A DNA stretch of 64,000 bases from assembly GCA_977017575.1 (NCBI GenBank), contig CDRNVI010000021.1:620001-684000 (forward strand), written 5' to 3'. Under the pieces are notes generated by a model. The model saw nothing but the letters and a program-made list of their open reading frames with translations. It was not told the DNA's origin and ran no database searches. Positions 30,401 through 38,411 of the stretch are shown in pieces. The position numbers were made by a program, and so were the translations under genes. This DNA comes from Paramoeba atlantica. Taxonomy: Eukaryota; Protista; Discosea. Every line of letters begins with the position of its first letter. Within the stretch, counting starts at the first letter, position 1.

Positions 30401-30769
30401 TCGAATGAAGAGAAACTGTTTTTCGGTTCTTCTACATTCATAATCCCGTCACAAGAATCGGAGGCGGTCTCTTCTATTGGTGAGACTAGTGTTGCCATTC
30501 CCGTTTGTTTACCTTGGCTTACAATCGTCCGTTCGAACGTTTCTCTTGCCGTCCGACTCAGTCCAGAAAGATGCGACTCAAAAAAATCTTTGCTTTCAAA
30601 AAAGATACTTCAACAGCTGTACAAGGCAGCGGATTTGCACCATCAATTGTCACCTCAATTGTTATCTCAAATTAGAAACTGGGAAGAAAATGACATCATT
30701 CCTCTACTTCCTTCCGGACGATGTAGAGTACATTCGTGGAAAGCATTAAAGCCAACCATAGAACTTTAG
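27491..30769 (+). CDS. NEMF: NEMF/Rqc2/Tae2 ribosome quality-control factor
   Basis: RVNNIYD, PSGFTMKLRKHLR, GDRVVCL, GNVILMD, LNAYQNAQTFYD and WFEKFLWFKTSQNFLVVVARDKTQNELLWKRY. Confidence 0.9.
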   Translation: MATDIMTLGSRQRMSLPDLVIVIEELKAFLIGSRVNNIYDNTSRDGFYTFKLTSRSVPHEKFTVALESGWRIHRTWYKRPTGVDHAHPSGFTMKLRKHLRNTVVRDVCVERGDRVVCLAFGFESGANYFLVTECYGKGNVILMDADRLVLAALRPELVDRGARKVDSEKTAQINAETDGRNAISNVDPNRLIDTCVTTSQINQMFPFIKAKISTNDKVCKWENAFKTVLLENSSMRLRQALLRATFLGPVLIDHILHVAFGRIEAENGLQPIDLSTTCLAVLSHPSLLHSLSFELMTCATEIQGRISEPETKSFGFLYRKRVQIQESNRQEPPLSPALQVPDTLERMENFTTDDMMEKVSLNQGEYQNLNKQLSTHQPQETMSNYPPVVFSFLPIVHLKNMLIEERLSSLNHALDTYYTFEEIRNVESHREKLFTEAESKIVRFEREHRRRVQSLQKEEVRRELQALTIYQNMDVVESLLTVFREALNRRISWDDISRLVARRHREGDSLFDRLCRFNLEKREITLKLPYSDPGNENSEELSSATANMNSVLAEKMRDNDFLEITLSVDLNAYQNAQTFYDVRKKQHAKLEKTLASECKAAKGAFLASQKIQRKQTQIRKAPLYQRVSAWFEKFLWFKTSQNFLVVVARDKTQNELLWKRYVSKEDIVLLVDTNTLESTPSSTIFSLNRGHEFISLAVIKLSFASLGVEIGQDLALNVVKPMILHSLEEAAIFSACYSSMWDKKQRKLSICSTERQVVFSWAKHARLETTQDVNALEPGPGKQSVSNKKVSFNLTLTFTGEIERENIMALELGCTALCLPKETPSPPIKHRLSNENGTQFRKKSPVHDSSAHSLIFLNPRTGNTELNPATEDTKRILQKKGISKTKLKKIAKHKEQWGVNSTPEQPIEKNHVNASLSTEQDVKISIDMERNMNESTPIVDDHDVENNRIYKRPERLALNSIVSQNTSFFLSNEEKLFFGSSTFIIPSQESEAVSSIGETSVAIPVCLPWLTIVRSNVSLAVRLSPERCDSKKSLLSKKILQQLYKAADLHHQLSPQLLSQIRNWEENDIIPLLPSGRCRVHSWKALKPTIEL

Positions 30770-31750: not shown

Positions 31751-33245
31751 GGCGCGAGCGACACCCCCGTGTTGGAGGACAATGACGGTTCGCAGGGAGG
31801 GGAGAAGGGAGAGGTGGCGGGGGTGAATAACTATACAAAGGAAGTAACCATACAAAGGAAGTAACCGAAAAAAAGTTAGAAACGTAGGTATAGCGTATTT
31901 TGACATGAAAAACTTGAACTAGACAGTATATAAATACAAACTTACGTCGGGTCCTGATATACTGTATGTATCAGGTTCGTAGGGAAAAATTTGAGCCCCC
32001 CCCAAAAAAGAAATCCGGCGCCGCTTCGCCAAAAAGGACAATTAGGTGGTGCGGGTGGGACTACGACAATTAAGTGGGGGGGCACAGTATAAATATGGCA
32101 GCGTTATAAATTCTGGCAAATTTATAATTATTTACGAAGGGGACAGTATACAGCCCAGTGGGGGGGCAGCTATATACTGCCCCCCCCCCCACTTAAGCGC
32201 AACCGGGTTTTGGCCGAAAATTGCGCTTAAGGAGCCTGGTCAGAAATATCTCAAGGGGAAAAGATATTTCGGGCAAAAAAAATAAAAAAAAGTCGCGCAG
32301 CTTCGCGGCGCGGATAGCATCTGTGCTTCTTAGCATTTATGTTGTGTACTTATGTTTCGTGAGTCATCTTCTAATCGGTGCCGTCTCCAAACTGTTCCTC
32401 ACCTTCGTGTCCTCGGTAAGTGCGGGGGGGGTGGGATGGGATGGGATGCAACATGTTTGACGATTCTGTGCATTTGCATATTGTAGTTACGATTCGTTAA
32501 AAGAAACAGAAAATGACTAAAAGTGAAGTTGTTCTAAAAAGGAGACTGCTTGTAAATTATTTTGGTTCACCGGCACTATAAATGTAGGTTGAAAATAAGT
32601 AAAATTTGTTTGAACAATCTTTCCCAAAAGGACTCAGGAAAAAAAATTTGATCTTTCGTTGATCTCTTTTCTTATTTTTTCTTTTTGCTTACTTACCAGA
32701 CCACACGTTTTTTCGATCAGATGTGCCCCCTACCTCTAATGGTAAGACCCCAAAAAACGTCCGAAATATGGGGAGAATACGAAATATGGGGAGAATCGGG
32801 TATTTGTACCAAAAGTTGGATTATTCTGGACCGTTTCGCAATTTTTTCCTTTTTAGTCCCTTCATTAAACGCTGAAGCAGTTCTCAACGCGAAGGGAGTA
32901 GCCGTGGTGGCTTCCAAGAGGGTTCAAACTGGATGGGAGTGTCCGGGAGCGCCTGGGAGCGCACCTTATCCTTTTTACAGGTCACCAATACCAAGTAGAC
33001 CAATGTACATGTAGTAGTACTACATGTACTACATGTACATGTAGTAGACCAATGTAGTATATCCTGGGCGGTCCATTGAGTATTCCAAGCATTGAAATAT
33101 AAGTTGGAACGTCATGAGTACGAGTGGAAACGTTTTAAAAAGTCACGTAAAAGTTTTTTCGAGCGGAAAAAAATCATCAGAAAAAAATGGATTTTAACCT
33201 ACATTTATAGTTCCGGTTACCCATTATTTTTTAACATTATCACTC

Positions 33246-33314
33246 CTTCGTAAACACGCTTGTTACCGGTCCCAAGCCCGGCACCGCCATATTCGGCGGA
33301 GTGTGAGGGTGAAG
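33246..33314 (+). ncRNA. Twister self-cleaving ribozyme, type P1
   Basis: P1 CTTCG/TGAAG, U^AA, P2 ACAC/GTGT, GC, P4 CCGG/CCGG enclosing L4 TCCCAAGC, P5 CCGCC/GGCGG, then GA and GGG (T1 partner of CCC). Predicted cleavage is between 33251 and 33252. Confidence 0.88.
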
Positions 33315-33490
33315 ATTTCAATACATCTATAGCACGATTATAAACTAAATATAATTGAACTACTTGTTTCTAGTATCCAGTATAACTGCTACATTTAGCT
33401 AAACATTTAACTAAACAATCATACACGCCTGAAAATGTCACGCATCAATTCGCTTGGTCCCGGCCTGGCAGTACTTCATCATCTGTAACA

Positions 33491-33710
33491 AGGCCCATGG
33501 GCTCCGTACCCTTCGGGTATCACTGCCCCAGCAGTCGTGCTGGGAGGCCCATGGGCTCCGTGTCCTTCGGGGCACACTTGCCGTTGCATTTATACATCCT
33601 CTGTAACGAGGCCCATGGGCTCCGTACCCTTCGGGGTACCACCGCCCCAGCATTCGTGCTGGGAGGCCCATGGGCTCCGTGTCCTTCGGTGCACACTTGC
33701 CGTTCCATTT
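33491..33710 (+). repeat. 2 x ~118-bp tandem repeat, each with two AGGCCCATGGGCTCCGT sub-repeats and UUCG-type hairpins
   Basis: Sub-repeats start at 33491, 33545, 33609 and 33664. Confidence 0.9.
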
Positions 33711-33820
33711 GCGCTATACATCCTCCTCTCCAGCATGTTTTTTTAATGAAGTGAAAACAGAATAAAAACAGAAGGGAGAGGGTGGGAAGTTGTGACGTGC
33801 TATGGCATGCCTGGCACCTA

Positions 33821-33978
33821 GGGCTTGGTCCCGGTAACATGGTGCTTACGAAGGAGTGATAATGAGGGAGTTGCTATGCCCTGTCCATGGTATCATGTTC
33901 AGGGGAACAGCGACCCCCCATTATCTCGGCGTAGTAAACACGCCTTGGCTTGCCTGGCACTACGATTCCCGAAAAAAA
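33821..33978 (+). repeat. Internal complementary region (reverse complement of the element's joined ends)
   Basis: 33846-33909 is a perfect 64-nt complement of [35586-35634 joined to 33235-33253 via the shared CATT]. Confidence 0.85.
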
Positions 33979-34040
33979 ACCTTAGTTCCTTAATCCTCAC
34001 TTGAGGCATGGTAACGGGAGTCCTCCCCCCTAAGAAGATT

Positions 34041-34309
34041 TGAAGTTGAAAAATATGGAGTGTTTGGGGGCGAGAAAACAAAGGGGGAGGAGTAATGTTG
34101 GTGCGTTATAGATCCCCCCATATGGAAGTATCGAGGCACACACCGGACGTCTCGGGTTGACGCTCGGAATACGAATATGAAGTTGAAAAATATGGAGTGT
34201 TCGGGGGAGAGAAAACAAAGGGGGGGAGTATTGTTGGTGCGTTATAGATCCCCCCATACGGAAGTATCGAGGCACACACCGGACATCTCGGGTTGACGCT
34301 CGGAATACG
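34041..34309 (+). repeat. 2 x 137-bp-period tandem duplication inside the element
   Basis: TGAAGTTGAAAAATATGGAGTGTT...GGTTGACGCTCGGAATACG at 34041 and 34178. Confidence 0.9.
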
Positions 34310-34572
34310 GCTTTTCAGGATATCTCGCCTAGTAGGAATATTGAATCAGAAATTCAGACCGACGATAGTGAACGCGTTAGTGCTTATTCGGTGGAGAGAG
34401 AAAAAAGAAAACTAGAAAAAAAAAGCAAACGGTTGCTTTGCTTGATGCATTTATACCCGATATATTCTTTGTTAACGAAGATTCATCATAAATACTGAAG
34501 GAGCAACTTGGTTTCTTTACATCAACACACCTAAAACATGGTTTACCATGGGGTATCAAATGTTGCACGGCA

Positions 34573-35157
34573 TTGAAAAGTACCCAAAATTTTATTGAAT
34601 GGATAAATTGTCCCCCTTTTCACGGGAAAATAAGGAAACTAGCCTCCGGGGTTTGGTTACAACATTTATTAGAACTCGTGGAATGCGGGGTGCTACGTGT
34701 GGCACACGACTCTCGATCATCATCACGTTTATATTTACGTTACTTCGAGGCATCAAAAGGGGAGGAATTGTCAAGAAGTATTGCGGATGGAACACCACTA
34801 AATGAGATGTGCAATCGCCCTCCTTGCTTGAATTTTCCAGCTATCGCTGAAATTATCCATGTAATAGAAAATTTCCCCAACGTAAACTTTTTATCCGCTG
34901 ATATGCGACACTGGTTTCACCAGAGTGAAATACCATCAGAATCGGGGCGTACATCAGTTAGGAGATCGATGTGTAATGAGATCACGGAAATGCATGGACA
35001 GATAGGGAAACATGGACATTCTTTTCGAATTTTCCATATTAAATCTAAAGAAAACCCAGCGGACGGGTTGACTCGAGAAGAGCATAATTATGACATAAAA
35101 GAAGCACTCCTGAACTCAGCTCTAAGAGCTGGCGATGTACATGTAGACCCTATGTAA
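34573..35157 (+). pseudogene. Internally deleted reverse transcriptase / RNase H ORF
   Basis: RT N-terminal motifs LVECGVL..YFEASK..SRSIADGTPLNEMCNRPPCLNFP..FLSADMRHWFHQ are joined directly to an RNase H C-terminus GRTSVRR..IFHIKSKENPADGLTR. No YxDD is present, and the ORF start is TTG. Confidence 0.7.
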
Positions 35158-35812
35158 GAATTATAGAAAGCGTAACTGGAGGAAACAAACACACGAATCT
35201 AGAGTAATTAGTAAAATTTATGAGTGGATAGCATGAGGAATGGCAAAGAAAGTAAATCCCCCCCCAAAAGAAAAAACGTTAACCAAAGGTTTACGCCAAC
35301 CCTTTGTTCTATTGCACTCAAAGTTTTCTACTCCATTATGCAGTAAAATTTCCTTCGTATTTCTTCTTCCGAAAATTTTCTATAAATGCACCCTGGTCTC
35401 ACACCCCAGCCTTCTCGACGCATGAGTAAAACCGAGCTGCCGGGGAGATCACTCGGTTGTGGGAGCGGGCCCCTTAAGTGGGAAGCGACTGGGCTGCGAA
35501 ATGAACCGAAAATATATTTTTTTCGGCAATCGTAGTGCCAGGCAAGCCAAGGCGTGTTTACTACGCCGAGATAATGGGGAGTTGATGTTCCCCTGAACAT
35601 GATACCATGGACAGGGCATAGCAACTCCCTCATTTAGTGTGTGAACGAATCGTTTGCAACCTGCTTTCGAGAGCACGCCATGCTGTAGTGGTACGAAAAG
35701 TGTTCCCAGCATATTTTCATATCTTTGAACGAGAATGCACCCAGCCAATTTCATTAGCACTTCCCCTATGGCAACTGGTCGTATGCTTGGTTTATTTATT
35801 GTCCTAGCTGAG

Positions 35813-37793: not shown

Positions 37794-38411
37794 ATGAATG
37801 ACTTTATACGCCCTTGTCGCATCCGAGGCAACTCCCTGCCACCTGAGTACGAGATGGCTTATTTTATTCAGCCTATTGCGAATCCACACGAAAGCTGGAC
37901 GACGCACACCCCTGTGTGCTCTTGGTTGGGTGTGAAATGTGTCGATTCCCGCGTCGTTTCGCATATTTCGTGGCAGGGAATGCTCCTACGCGGTAGTGTG
38001 CGGTGGGAACACACACCACCGCACGTAACGCACATAAACTTAGGCGCTGGACGTTACGAGCAATTTTTTCGCGTCAACTACTTAAACGGCCCGTTACCTC
38101 TTGGAGTGCTTCCCCGAACACTCGTGTTGTTTTCCGTGTTTCATGCACAGTACCATGGAGAGCTGGATATGACGGTGCTGCCTCCTGAGCTGCGATTGCT
38201 TGACTTGAAAGAAAACTTTTTCTCAGGTACGCTAGATCTTACACAGCTTCCCAGCACATTAGAAATTCTTAGCCTGAGTGGTAACTCTTTTGTTGGGGAA
38301 ATCAACTTTCTTTTATTGCCCACGCGCTTGAAGCGTTTGGACATTTTGGGGGCACAAGTCGTTCCTAAGGATGCTTTTGTTCCACCCCGTGTTGTTTTGC
38401 GACTGGGATAA
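37794..38411 (+). CDS. LRR protein, dispersed family copy 4
   Basis: RIRGNSLPPEY..VCSWLGVKC cap followed by LRRs. Confidence 0.85.
   Translation: MNDFIRPCRIRGNSLPPEYEMAYFIQPIANPHESWTTHTPVCSWLGVKCVDSRVVSHISWQGMLLRGSVRWEHTPPHVTHINLGAGRYEQFFRVNYLNGPLPLGVLPRTLVLFSVFHAQYHGELDMTVLPPELRLLDLKENFFSGTLDLTQLPSTLEILSLSGNSFVGEINFLLLPTRLKRLDILGAQVVPKDAFVPPRVVLRLG

Follow-up and report, generated by a model that had tools for sequence, protein, structure and literature searches.

Structure of the element and its relatives

The window analysed here is a 64,000-nt stretch of Paramoeba atlantica DNA (contig CDRNVI010000021.1, positions 620,001 to 684,000, forward strand). At 33235-35634 it contains a copy of a tyrosine-recombinase (YR) retrotransposon that begins with a predicted twister ribozyme and carries internally an inverted copy of its own joined termini, here called the internal complementary region (ICR). 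Similarity to other copies of the element stops precisely at 33235 and 35634, and in the Logan contigs of three runs (X1-X3; library type unspecified, begin and end pile-ups not reported) word depth is ~0 beyond 35632, marking the right limit. The features of the window copy are as follows (ORF, open reading frame; RT, reverse transcriptase; RH, RNase H).

33235-35634, +: whole element, a 2.4-kb, internally deleted, non-autonomous copy of family A
33235-33251, +: 17 nt upstream of the predicted twister cut, with the 5' P1 strand (33246-33250); perfect complement at ICR 33848-33864; constant in three family-A copies with differing flanks
33246-33314, +: type-P1 twister ribozyme, with P1 at 33246-50/33310-14, the predicted U^A cut at 33251/33252, UAA at 33251-53, P2 at 33254-57/33301-04 and GC at 33258-59
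33266-81, 33284-99 and 33305-09, +: inner parts of the twister as placed by the Rfam alignment, namely P4 with loop UCCCAAGC, an extra hairpin, and GAGGG
33252-33279, +: 5' segment that would be kept after cleavage; imperfect complement of ICR 33821-33848, with fixed differences at 33254, 33258 and 33270-71
33468-33725, +: tandem array of UUCG-capped hairpins in ~120-nt units, between ribozyme and ICR; same layout in families B and E
33821-33864, +: left half of the ICR, reverse complement of the first 45 nt of the element
33861-33978, +: right half of the ICR, reverse complement of the last 118 nt of the element; AATG at 33861-33864 is common to both halves
34573-35157, +: ORF remnant of 194 aa, similar to the start of the RT ORF of families B and D
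35517-35634, +: right end, complementary to ICR 33861-33978 and ending in CATT; within it, 35552-35576 is an inverted copy (80%) of the left terminus

Seven further copies were recovered through protein look-ups.

L001 4457-5940: family A, the window's own; ICR deleted
L002 3802-6613: family A; complete
L003 3756-6042: family A; 5' part missing, 610-bp insertion within the ICR
L061 15373-10034, minus strand: family B (77% identical to A); 5.3 kb, with frameshifted gag, YR and RT/RH
L063 2867-9272: family B; complete but for an inserted DNA transposon
L064: family D; left end lost, as the contig begins inside the element
L068 5178-12432: family E; 7.3 kb, with intact ORFs of 347 aa, 293 aa (YR) and 480 aa (RT)

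The interruptions lie at 2999-5059 in L063 (a DDE_3 transposase gene), at 3857-4467 in L003 (the 610 bp in its ICR) and at 5473-6152 in L002. Three other candidates were set aside: L065 and L066 are short metagenome contigs without a 5' part, and L067 is a degenerate fragment with neither twister nor ICR. Families A, B and E share one layout, running from twister through spacer, tandem hairpin array, ICR, gag, YR and RT/RH to the right end; their ICR precedes gag, at a distance of 0.6-1.5 kb from the left end. Complementarity of the ICR to the adjacent outer ends of both termini is found in the window copy and in families B, E and D (right half only in D).

Complementarity of the termini to the ICR

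The ICR (33821-33978) is the reverse complement of the junction that the right and left ends would form in a circle, with a single CATT. The preliminary description of this locus had claimed that the left end matches the ICR perfectly over 33235-33253 and diverges from 33254, two bases past the predicted cleavage, and direct string comparison bears this out. Complementarity of 33235-33253 to 33846-33864 is 19/19, and the first ungapped mismatch (A versus G) falls at 33254, two bases past U33251/A33252. Further differences follow at 33258 (a 1-nt gap), 33260 (T/A) and 33270-33271 (TC/GA), and the imperfect complementarity runs on to 33279/33821. Set against the background of 4/118 in the right-end/ICR pair, the six differences in 26 inner left-end positions have a probability of P = 2e-4.

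At the right end, 114/118 positions (97%) of 35517-35634 are complementary to 33861-33978, with mismatches at 35527, 35580, 35583 and 35585. The preliminary description had seen here a pattern like that of the left end. The outer 49 nt are indeed perfect and the four mismatches internal; however, no other copy has any of these mismatches, three of which are on the ICR side, and all four would fall within the inner 69/118 positions by chance with P = 0.11, as expected of random decay. No family has a fixed difference between right end and ICR. As a templating footprint, the right-end pattern was therefore rejected. In L003, two derived variants, 29 and 52 nt from the terminus, are common to right end and ICR, which suggests that the two were homogenised at the last transposition of this copy.

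CATT stands at both integrated ends (33235-33238 and 35631-35634) and once in the ICR (33861-33864), recalling the trinucleotides at DIRS junctions. Among the ends compared (L001, L002, L003, L061, L063, L068 and the window), left flanks end in A in 5/6 cases and right flanks begin with T or A. L002 and L068 end in CAGT instead of CATT, which might be the target's own core and not a mutation. The inverted copy of the left terminus within the right end (35552-35576, 25 nt, 80%) is offset 58 nt from the end and includes the TAAACACGC cut-site motif. Because the right end carries this copy, the ICR holds a second, direct "pseudo-left-end" (33919-33943, in a hairpin with a 6-bp stem); families A, B, D and E all retain it, and proteins may bind or priming may occur there.

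A predicted twister ribozyme flush with the left terminus

When the search was restricted to the left end, the Rfam twister-P1 model (RF03160) aligned full-length to 33247-33313 with 28.2 bits, matching every conserved consensus letter except one C of GCC; twisters were seen only in such region-restricted E-value scans. The low score can be traced to the model's P3 hairpin, which is replaced by a 6-nt linker, and to the extra hairpin inserted at 33284-99. The conserved core is otherwise present, comprising P1, UAA, P2, GC, the P4 loop (G)UCCCAAGC, GAGGG, and the complementarity of pseudoknots T1 and T2. The 16-nt P4 core is exact in the window, where 0.06 matches would be expected at up to two mismatches, as well as in E61, L063 and L068. 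Compensatory changes are seen in P1, in which U-A in family A corresponds to C-G in family B and the closing pair G.U in A to A-U in E, and in T2, in which C-G is replaced by A-U in the unrelated family C, although few independent lineages stand behind this test. The layout is the same as that of the Schistosoma mansoni twisters tabulated in PMC8501958. We regard the ribozyme as real, and self-cleavage is predicted.

In twisters the scissile U-A belongs to L1 and lies one base 3' of P1 (PMC8501958), which would place cleavage between U33251 and A33252. The full-length twister-P1 alignment puts the predicted site at the same position as the preliminary description had.

Several further observations concern the ribozyme region. 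The twister of E61 contains an 11-nt insertion of its own, which the second family-B copy lacks. In read contigs, a loose end at 33246 hints at a further subfamily starting CATTATCACAGA before CTTCG, and a loose end at 33282 indicates that several other repeat families share the twister up to this point and then diverge. The termini of the element are 10-20 times more abundant than its interior in read contigs.

Co-variation of the left end and ICR across families

The preliminary description had proposed that the copies be aligned, and had predicted that 33235-33251 would co-vary with the ICR of the same copy and that 33254-33279 would not. The left ends and the reverse-complemented ICRs were placed in one alignment; the first bases of each family are given below, with the cut marked by ^.

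Family A: CATTATCAC-TC-CTTCG-T^AA
Family B: CATTATCAC-AG-CTCCA-T^AA
Family E: CATTATCAC-AGG-CTTCA-T^AA

In the consensus of all three families, the terminal 17-18 nt are family-specific and, together with the next two bases (to cut+2), are those of the family's own ICR; no family consensus has a mismatch to the ICR before the cut. Differences between families are mirrored in the ICR, amounting to four substitutions between A and B and to an extra base plus a G-to-A change between A and E. The predicted co-variation of the pre-cut bases is thus seen between families.

Past the cut, three differences between left end and ICR are shared by families A, B and E: (i) A/G at cut+3 (33254), (ii) the absence from the ICR of one base at cut+7 (33258), and (iii) TC versus GA in the P4 loop at 33270-71, which in family B is TC versus AC plus one more gap. 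They start 3 nt after the cut and recur in seven independent sequences of families A and B. In the family-E copy L068, the right end matches the ICR at 99% over 121 nt, yet the left end departs from the ICR, solely at these three sites. Their recurrence, their being the only left-end/ICR differences in this young copy, and the P value of 2e-4 argue that they are a fixed family feature and not decay, which we ruled out as the origin of the inner left-end mismatches. The private mutations of old copies (e.g., three in the ICR of L002) indicate that both regions drift apart after insertion, as expected, and are uninformative on the model.

The ICR versions of the three sites alter core positions of the twister (L1, the GC of T1, and the T2 loop), and no left end carries them. 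Since ICR bases at these sites would damage the ribozyme, the left end should not be copyable from the ICR beyond about cut+2. Copying of the whole 45-nt left end from the ICR was rejected on the same grounds, as it would put into the core non-twister bases that no left end has. The pattern is the footprint expected if pre-cut bases were copied from the ICR and post-cut bases inherited through the RNA.

An unrelated element, family C, is headed by a different twister (23.4 bits) with unrelated flanking sequence, found at L001 2295-2180 (minus strand) and, identically, at L062 7945-8060. Of the 36 nt at its start, 27 precede the cut and 9 follow it; all 36 recur in inverted form (36/36) 2 kb downstream, at L062 9976-10011. 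Hairpin arrays follow the ribozyme, and after a further 4-7 kb come ORFs for RNase_H and Phage_integrase. A search of 20 kb did not reveal the right end of family C, and the inverted copy is for this reason only presumed to be an ICR or junction copy. Family C appears to follow the same logic, in that the stored inverted copy would span all pre-cut bases plus a short post-cut overlap. The ribozyme is flush with the terminus in four families, one of which (C) has unrelated termini.

These comparisons bear on the possibility that the ribozyme is no more than a fossil or chance motif and that the pattern reflects the coincidental decay of two old inverted repeats. Sub-threshold Rfam scores and the mutated core bases of decayed copies are what such a reading would lead one to find, but it would have to accommodate the exact 16-nt core in four copies, the compensatory changes in P1 and T2, the same three differences in a young, intact family-E copy, and a P value of 2e-4 against decay. 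We consider it the least probable of the readings, and very improbable.

Coding capacity of the related copies

The gene order gag, YR, RT/RH is found in L061, L064 and L068. Among the related autonomous copies, P0007 scores 28.5 bits with RVT_1 (cut-off 29.6) and 22.2 bits with RVT_3 (cut-off 21.6), and RVT_1 scores among relatives are 28.5 and 23.8 bits. The 293-aa ORF of L068 matches Phage_int_SAM_4 and then Phage_integrase in the right order, both below cut-off; a BLASTP match covers the HxLRHG motif of a PF00589-annotated integrase, and ESM Atlas neighbours, which we treat as leads, carry RVT_1 and Phage_int_SAM_1. Individually weak, these domain matches are jointly consistent with the presence of RT and YR. 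The combination that defines the DIRS order, RT/RNase H with a tyrosine recombinase, is thus found in related autonomous copies, but not in the window copy.

Of the coding region, the window copy retains only the 194-aa ORF (34573-35157), which begins like the RT ORF of relatives, matches beyond an internal deletion a C-terminal piece of the family-B polymerase region (motif ENPADGLTR), and has no Pfam match of its own. As this remnant of a deleted polymerase is its sole sizeable ORF, the window copy is taken to be non-autonomous. The RT piece matches 99 of 1.84 billion representative proteins at E <= 1e-3, suggesting that the lineage is rare in public data, and a search with the right-end ORF returned one relative only. 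An 18-mer that the right end and the ICR conserve, used to scan metagenomes, gave 57 single matches; none aligns to the element, and we attribute them to chance.

A model for restoration of the left terminus

We propose that the element belongs to a family of DIRS-order retrotransposons, with the gene order gag, YR, RT/RH, that are cut by a twister and rebuilt from an ICR, and we put the probability of this reading at roughly 0.6. The anatomy of the element, the identity pattern across its families and the coding capacity of its relatives are directly shown by the comparisons above. The elements, which have no evident promoter of their own, would be transcribed within a longer host transcript. 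The type-P1 twister, flush with the left terminus, would then cut between U33251 and A33252, freeing the element RNA and leaving the first 17 nt, with the 5' P1 strand, on the upstream RNA. Once the RNA is reverse-transcribed, the minus-strand cDNA could anneal intramolecularly, through its 3' end (the complement of 33252 onward), to the copy of the ICR (33821-33978), which lies between ribozyme and gag and would present the reverse complement of the circle junction. The cDNA 3' end would be extended over the 17 missing bases, up to the annealed cDNA 5' end; sealing of the nick would yield a circle, and the recombinase would insert this circle at a CATT-like site. Bases 1-17 (1-19 by identity) would in this way be inherited via the ICR and bases from 18 onward from the RNA, so that the ribozyme would be rebuilt from two separately inherited halves.

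In the window copy (family A), pairing with the ICR is predicted to give RNA duplexes of -26.4 kcal/mol upstream of the cut (17 nt) and -36.5 kcal/mol downstream of it (28 nt); pairing of the retained 5' segment is predicted at -37.6 kcal/mol in family B, and that of the 9-nt overlap of family C at -15.6 kcal/mol. Extension over the 17 missing bases is plausible, because the two terminal cDNA bases would be matched and pairing would be strong despite the mismatches.

The genomic setting is compatible with co-transcription and ribozyme release, a route already proposed for L1Tc and its HDV-like ribozyme (PMC5814959). About 27/32 long ORFs of the window lie on one strand, and both the window copy and the family-E copy are placed in sense orientation within almost entirely one-strand gene clusters.

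Several points weigh against this reading. All comparison copies come from one ENA assembly. The twister-P1 scores (28.2 bits in the window, 37.4 in family E and 23.4 in family C) are all below the gathering threshold of 67.2, and an Rfam scan of the whole window at that threshold gave no match. In the sole RNA-labelled run (X5) there are no reads of the element, and neither cleavage nor a 5' end at 33252 is seen there. From sequence identity, the point at which templating would end can be placed no more closely than between base 17/18 and base 19/20, and the model lacks an explanation for the retention of the same three differences by the ICRs of different families. Moreover, the predicted independence of 33254-33279 fails: 33261 and 33263 co-vary with the ICR between families, the inner linker reading TGTTA (A), AGATA (B) or TGATA (E) in both left end and ICR. 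To accommodate this inner co-variation, the model needs an extra assumption, either that annealing is selected, or that deeper templating occurs occasionally and only core-sparing conversions survive. Of the terminus restoration put forward in the preliminary description, then, what stands is that the pre-cut stretch equals the copy's own ICR and that fixed differences follow the cut; the right-end footprint and the independence of the inner bases do not.

Some of these points suit a different account, in which the ICR acts as an ordinary DIRS-type splint, the template is an uncut read-through RNA or one started from a promoter, and the twister does something else, such as detaching the upstream host RNA (with effects on its stability or translation) or releasing the hairpin-array RNA. 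The break in identity would then stem from core constraint acting in the left end only; as the twister core begins exactly at the cut, selective constraint alone predicts the same break position, which is a further point against an ICR-rebuilt terminus. It is in keeping with this account that inner non-core positions co-vary with the ICR just as outer ones do, and an RNA-labelled run without reads of the element raises no difficulty. What this account leaves unexplained is that the same non-twister ICR bases are kept in three families that are otherwise ~23% different, that the ribozyme is flush with the end in four families, including one with unrelated termini, and that the pre-cut stretch is free of mismatches in every family consensus. 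We regard it as unlikely, although the strongest of the alternatives.

A splint acting on RNA is also conceivable. In unit-length RNA derived from tandem copies or from circular-DNA transcripts, the ICR could pair both sides of the twister nick, and the 5'-OH and 2',3'-cyclic phosphate could be joined by an enzyme of the tRNA-ligase type or by reversal of the twister, giving a circular RNA template as in retrozymes. The predicted duplexes of -26.4 and -36.5 kcal/mol would place the nick inside a long helix, and ribozyme-bearing retroelements with circular RNAs are known (PMC4918200, PMC7761336). The copies are, however, single insertions and not tandems, a search of both strands around the right end gave no second ribozyme, and the recombinase encoded by the relatives suits a circle of DNA. 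Such a route seems to us quite improbable.

Returning to the ICR-rebuilt terminus, a fuller version of this reading, to which we would give about even odds, is that the families form a new lineage that is excised from host co-transcripts by its twister and that rebuilds the lost ribozyme strand and terminus in each generation from a 5'-proximal inverted "memory" copy. Because a twister cuts inside itself, such a lineage would have to re-create the ribozyme's 5' strand. The three ICR differences could then serve as a barrier against overwriting of the core or against its sequestration by the ICR.

Comparison with known systems

Twister ribozymes are widespread, and few have an assigned biological role. 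DIRS-type retrotransposition is largely a model, in which the templating role of the ICR is only indirectly supported; for DIRS-1 of Dictyostelium discoideum the model is reportedly that of Cappello et al., 1985.

Malicki et al. (PMC7192593) showed by experiment that DIRS-1 cannot do without its ICR, whose presumed role is to supply the termini that a subgenomic transcript lacks, through annealing within the molecule followed by DNA synthesis; integrated copies have short junction sequences on their flanks. The present families resemble DIRS-1 and DIRS1-like elements in combining an RT with a tyrosine recombinase, in having an internal region complementary to both adjacent termini, equivalent to the circle junction, and in the terminus restoration proposed for it (PMC7192593). 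In both, each terminus bears a short sequence that the ICR contains a single time, CATT in the window element and a trinucleotide in DIRS. Unlike DIRS1-like elements, the window element has no long inverted terminal repeats, only the 25-nt, 80% repeat offset 58 nt from the right end, and in its families the ICR lies 5' of gag and not beside the right repeat. Its relatives also differ from DIRS-1 in their gene order, gag-YR-RT/RH. Whereas the RNA 5' end of DIRS-1 is set by a promoter in the left repeat, here it would be set by the ribozyme, and the missing piece would be 17 nt instead of ~300 nt. By analogy, the family fits the accepted DIRS-1 model and would extend it with a new way of making subgenomic RNA.

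VIPER and TATE elements of kinetoplastids (PMC6681497) share the order gag, YR, RT/RH, the setting in one-strand gene clusters, and the existence of short non-autonomous derivatives (SIRE there, the 2.4-kb copy here), a comparison made by architecture and not by protein relatedness. They have split direct repeats (A1 ... B1-A2-B2), in contrast to the inverted 5'-proximal junction copy described here, and no ribozyme is reported for them. No direct copies of the termini, i.e., split direct repeats, were found in the window element and its relatives.

The closest parallel to the cut itself is Perere-3 (PMC8501958), a co-transcribed retrotransposon with a 5' twister that cuts at U-A beside P1 and removes the 5' P1 strand. 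The loss of that strand in Perere-3 indicates that the problem which the ICR would solve is a real one (PMC8501958). New Perere-3 copies start at the cut, with a 5' P1 strand that is flank or target-site duplication and a P1 that varies. Here, by contrast, the 17-18 nt before the cut are constant in all copies of a family and match the internal stored copy; the left ends keep these family-specific bases, and flanks diverge only before CATT, so that copies do not start at the cut as they do in Perere-3.

The HDV-like ribozymes (hepatitis delta virus type) of L1Tc, NARTc and R2 likewise free a retrotransposon RNA from a host or polycistronic co-transcript (PMC5814959). Unlike the twister, they cut at their own 5' edge and lose nothing, and therefore need no stored copy; their hosts are elements without long terminal repeats (non-LTR). 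Retrozymes and Penelope-like elements with hammerhead ribozymes (PMC4918200, PMC7761336) also have small self-cleaving ribozymes built into retroelements. Their ribozyme is of another class, however, and in retrozymes there are two cuts and a circular RNA, and there is neither recombinase nor ICR.

Our literature search found no paper joining "twister ribozyme" with DIRS and none linking self-cleaving ribozymes to an ICR, and "twister ribozyme" was absent from the top-ranked papers of a search that paired it with kinetoplastid, Bodo saltans, Euglenozoa or diplonemid. The terminal architecture (5'-proximal inverted ICR with gag-YR-RT) was not found in the descriptions of DIRS, Ngaro/PAT or VIPER that were consulted. 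We class the element as a new combination, a DIRS-order element with a 5'-proximal inverted ICR and a putatively twister-defined RNA start.

Should the proposed mechanism hold, the family would serve as a natural marker both for what twisters do and for how the ICR templates. The ribozyme would give the RNA a base-precise 5' end, and the fixed differences would show where ICR-templated sequence stops and RNA-derived sequence begins; because cut and differences together mark the template boundary, the ICR-restoration model would become testable to the single base. The family would also show how a self-interrupting ribozyme can persist in a retroelement without degrading, whereas in Perere-3 the lost strand is not restored. 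If true, two halves of one ribozyme helix are inherited by different routes.

Other repeats within and around the element

The hairpin array at 33468-33725 has a word depth 10-100 times that of the remainder of the element, reaching 47,116 in run X2, which suggests that the array is common to many other repeats. UUCG hairpin arrays are also present in L061, L063 and L068. Elsewhere within the element, 34038-34309 is a tandem duplication of 136-137 nt units that are 95% identical; other copies have one or two units.

Outside the element, a unit of ~680 bp with 42-nt inverted repeats (32553-32594/33192-33233) adjoins the left end and is possibly a miniature inverted-repeat transposable element, and 33040-33234 is multi-copy in read contigs. 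An 81-nt direct repeat lies downstream (35812-35892/36866-36946), and a pair of 53-nt inverted repeats 4.5 kb apart (32184-32236/36732-36784) brackets the whole region. The element may sit in a nest of other repeats between the ORFs that end at 30769 and start at 37794.

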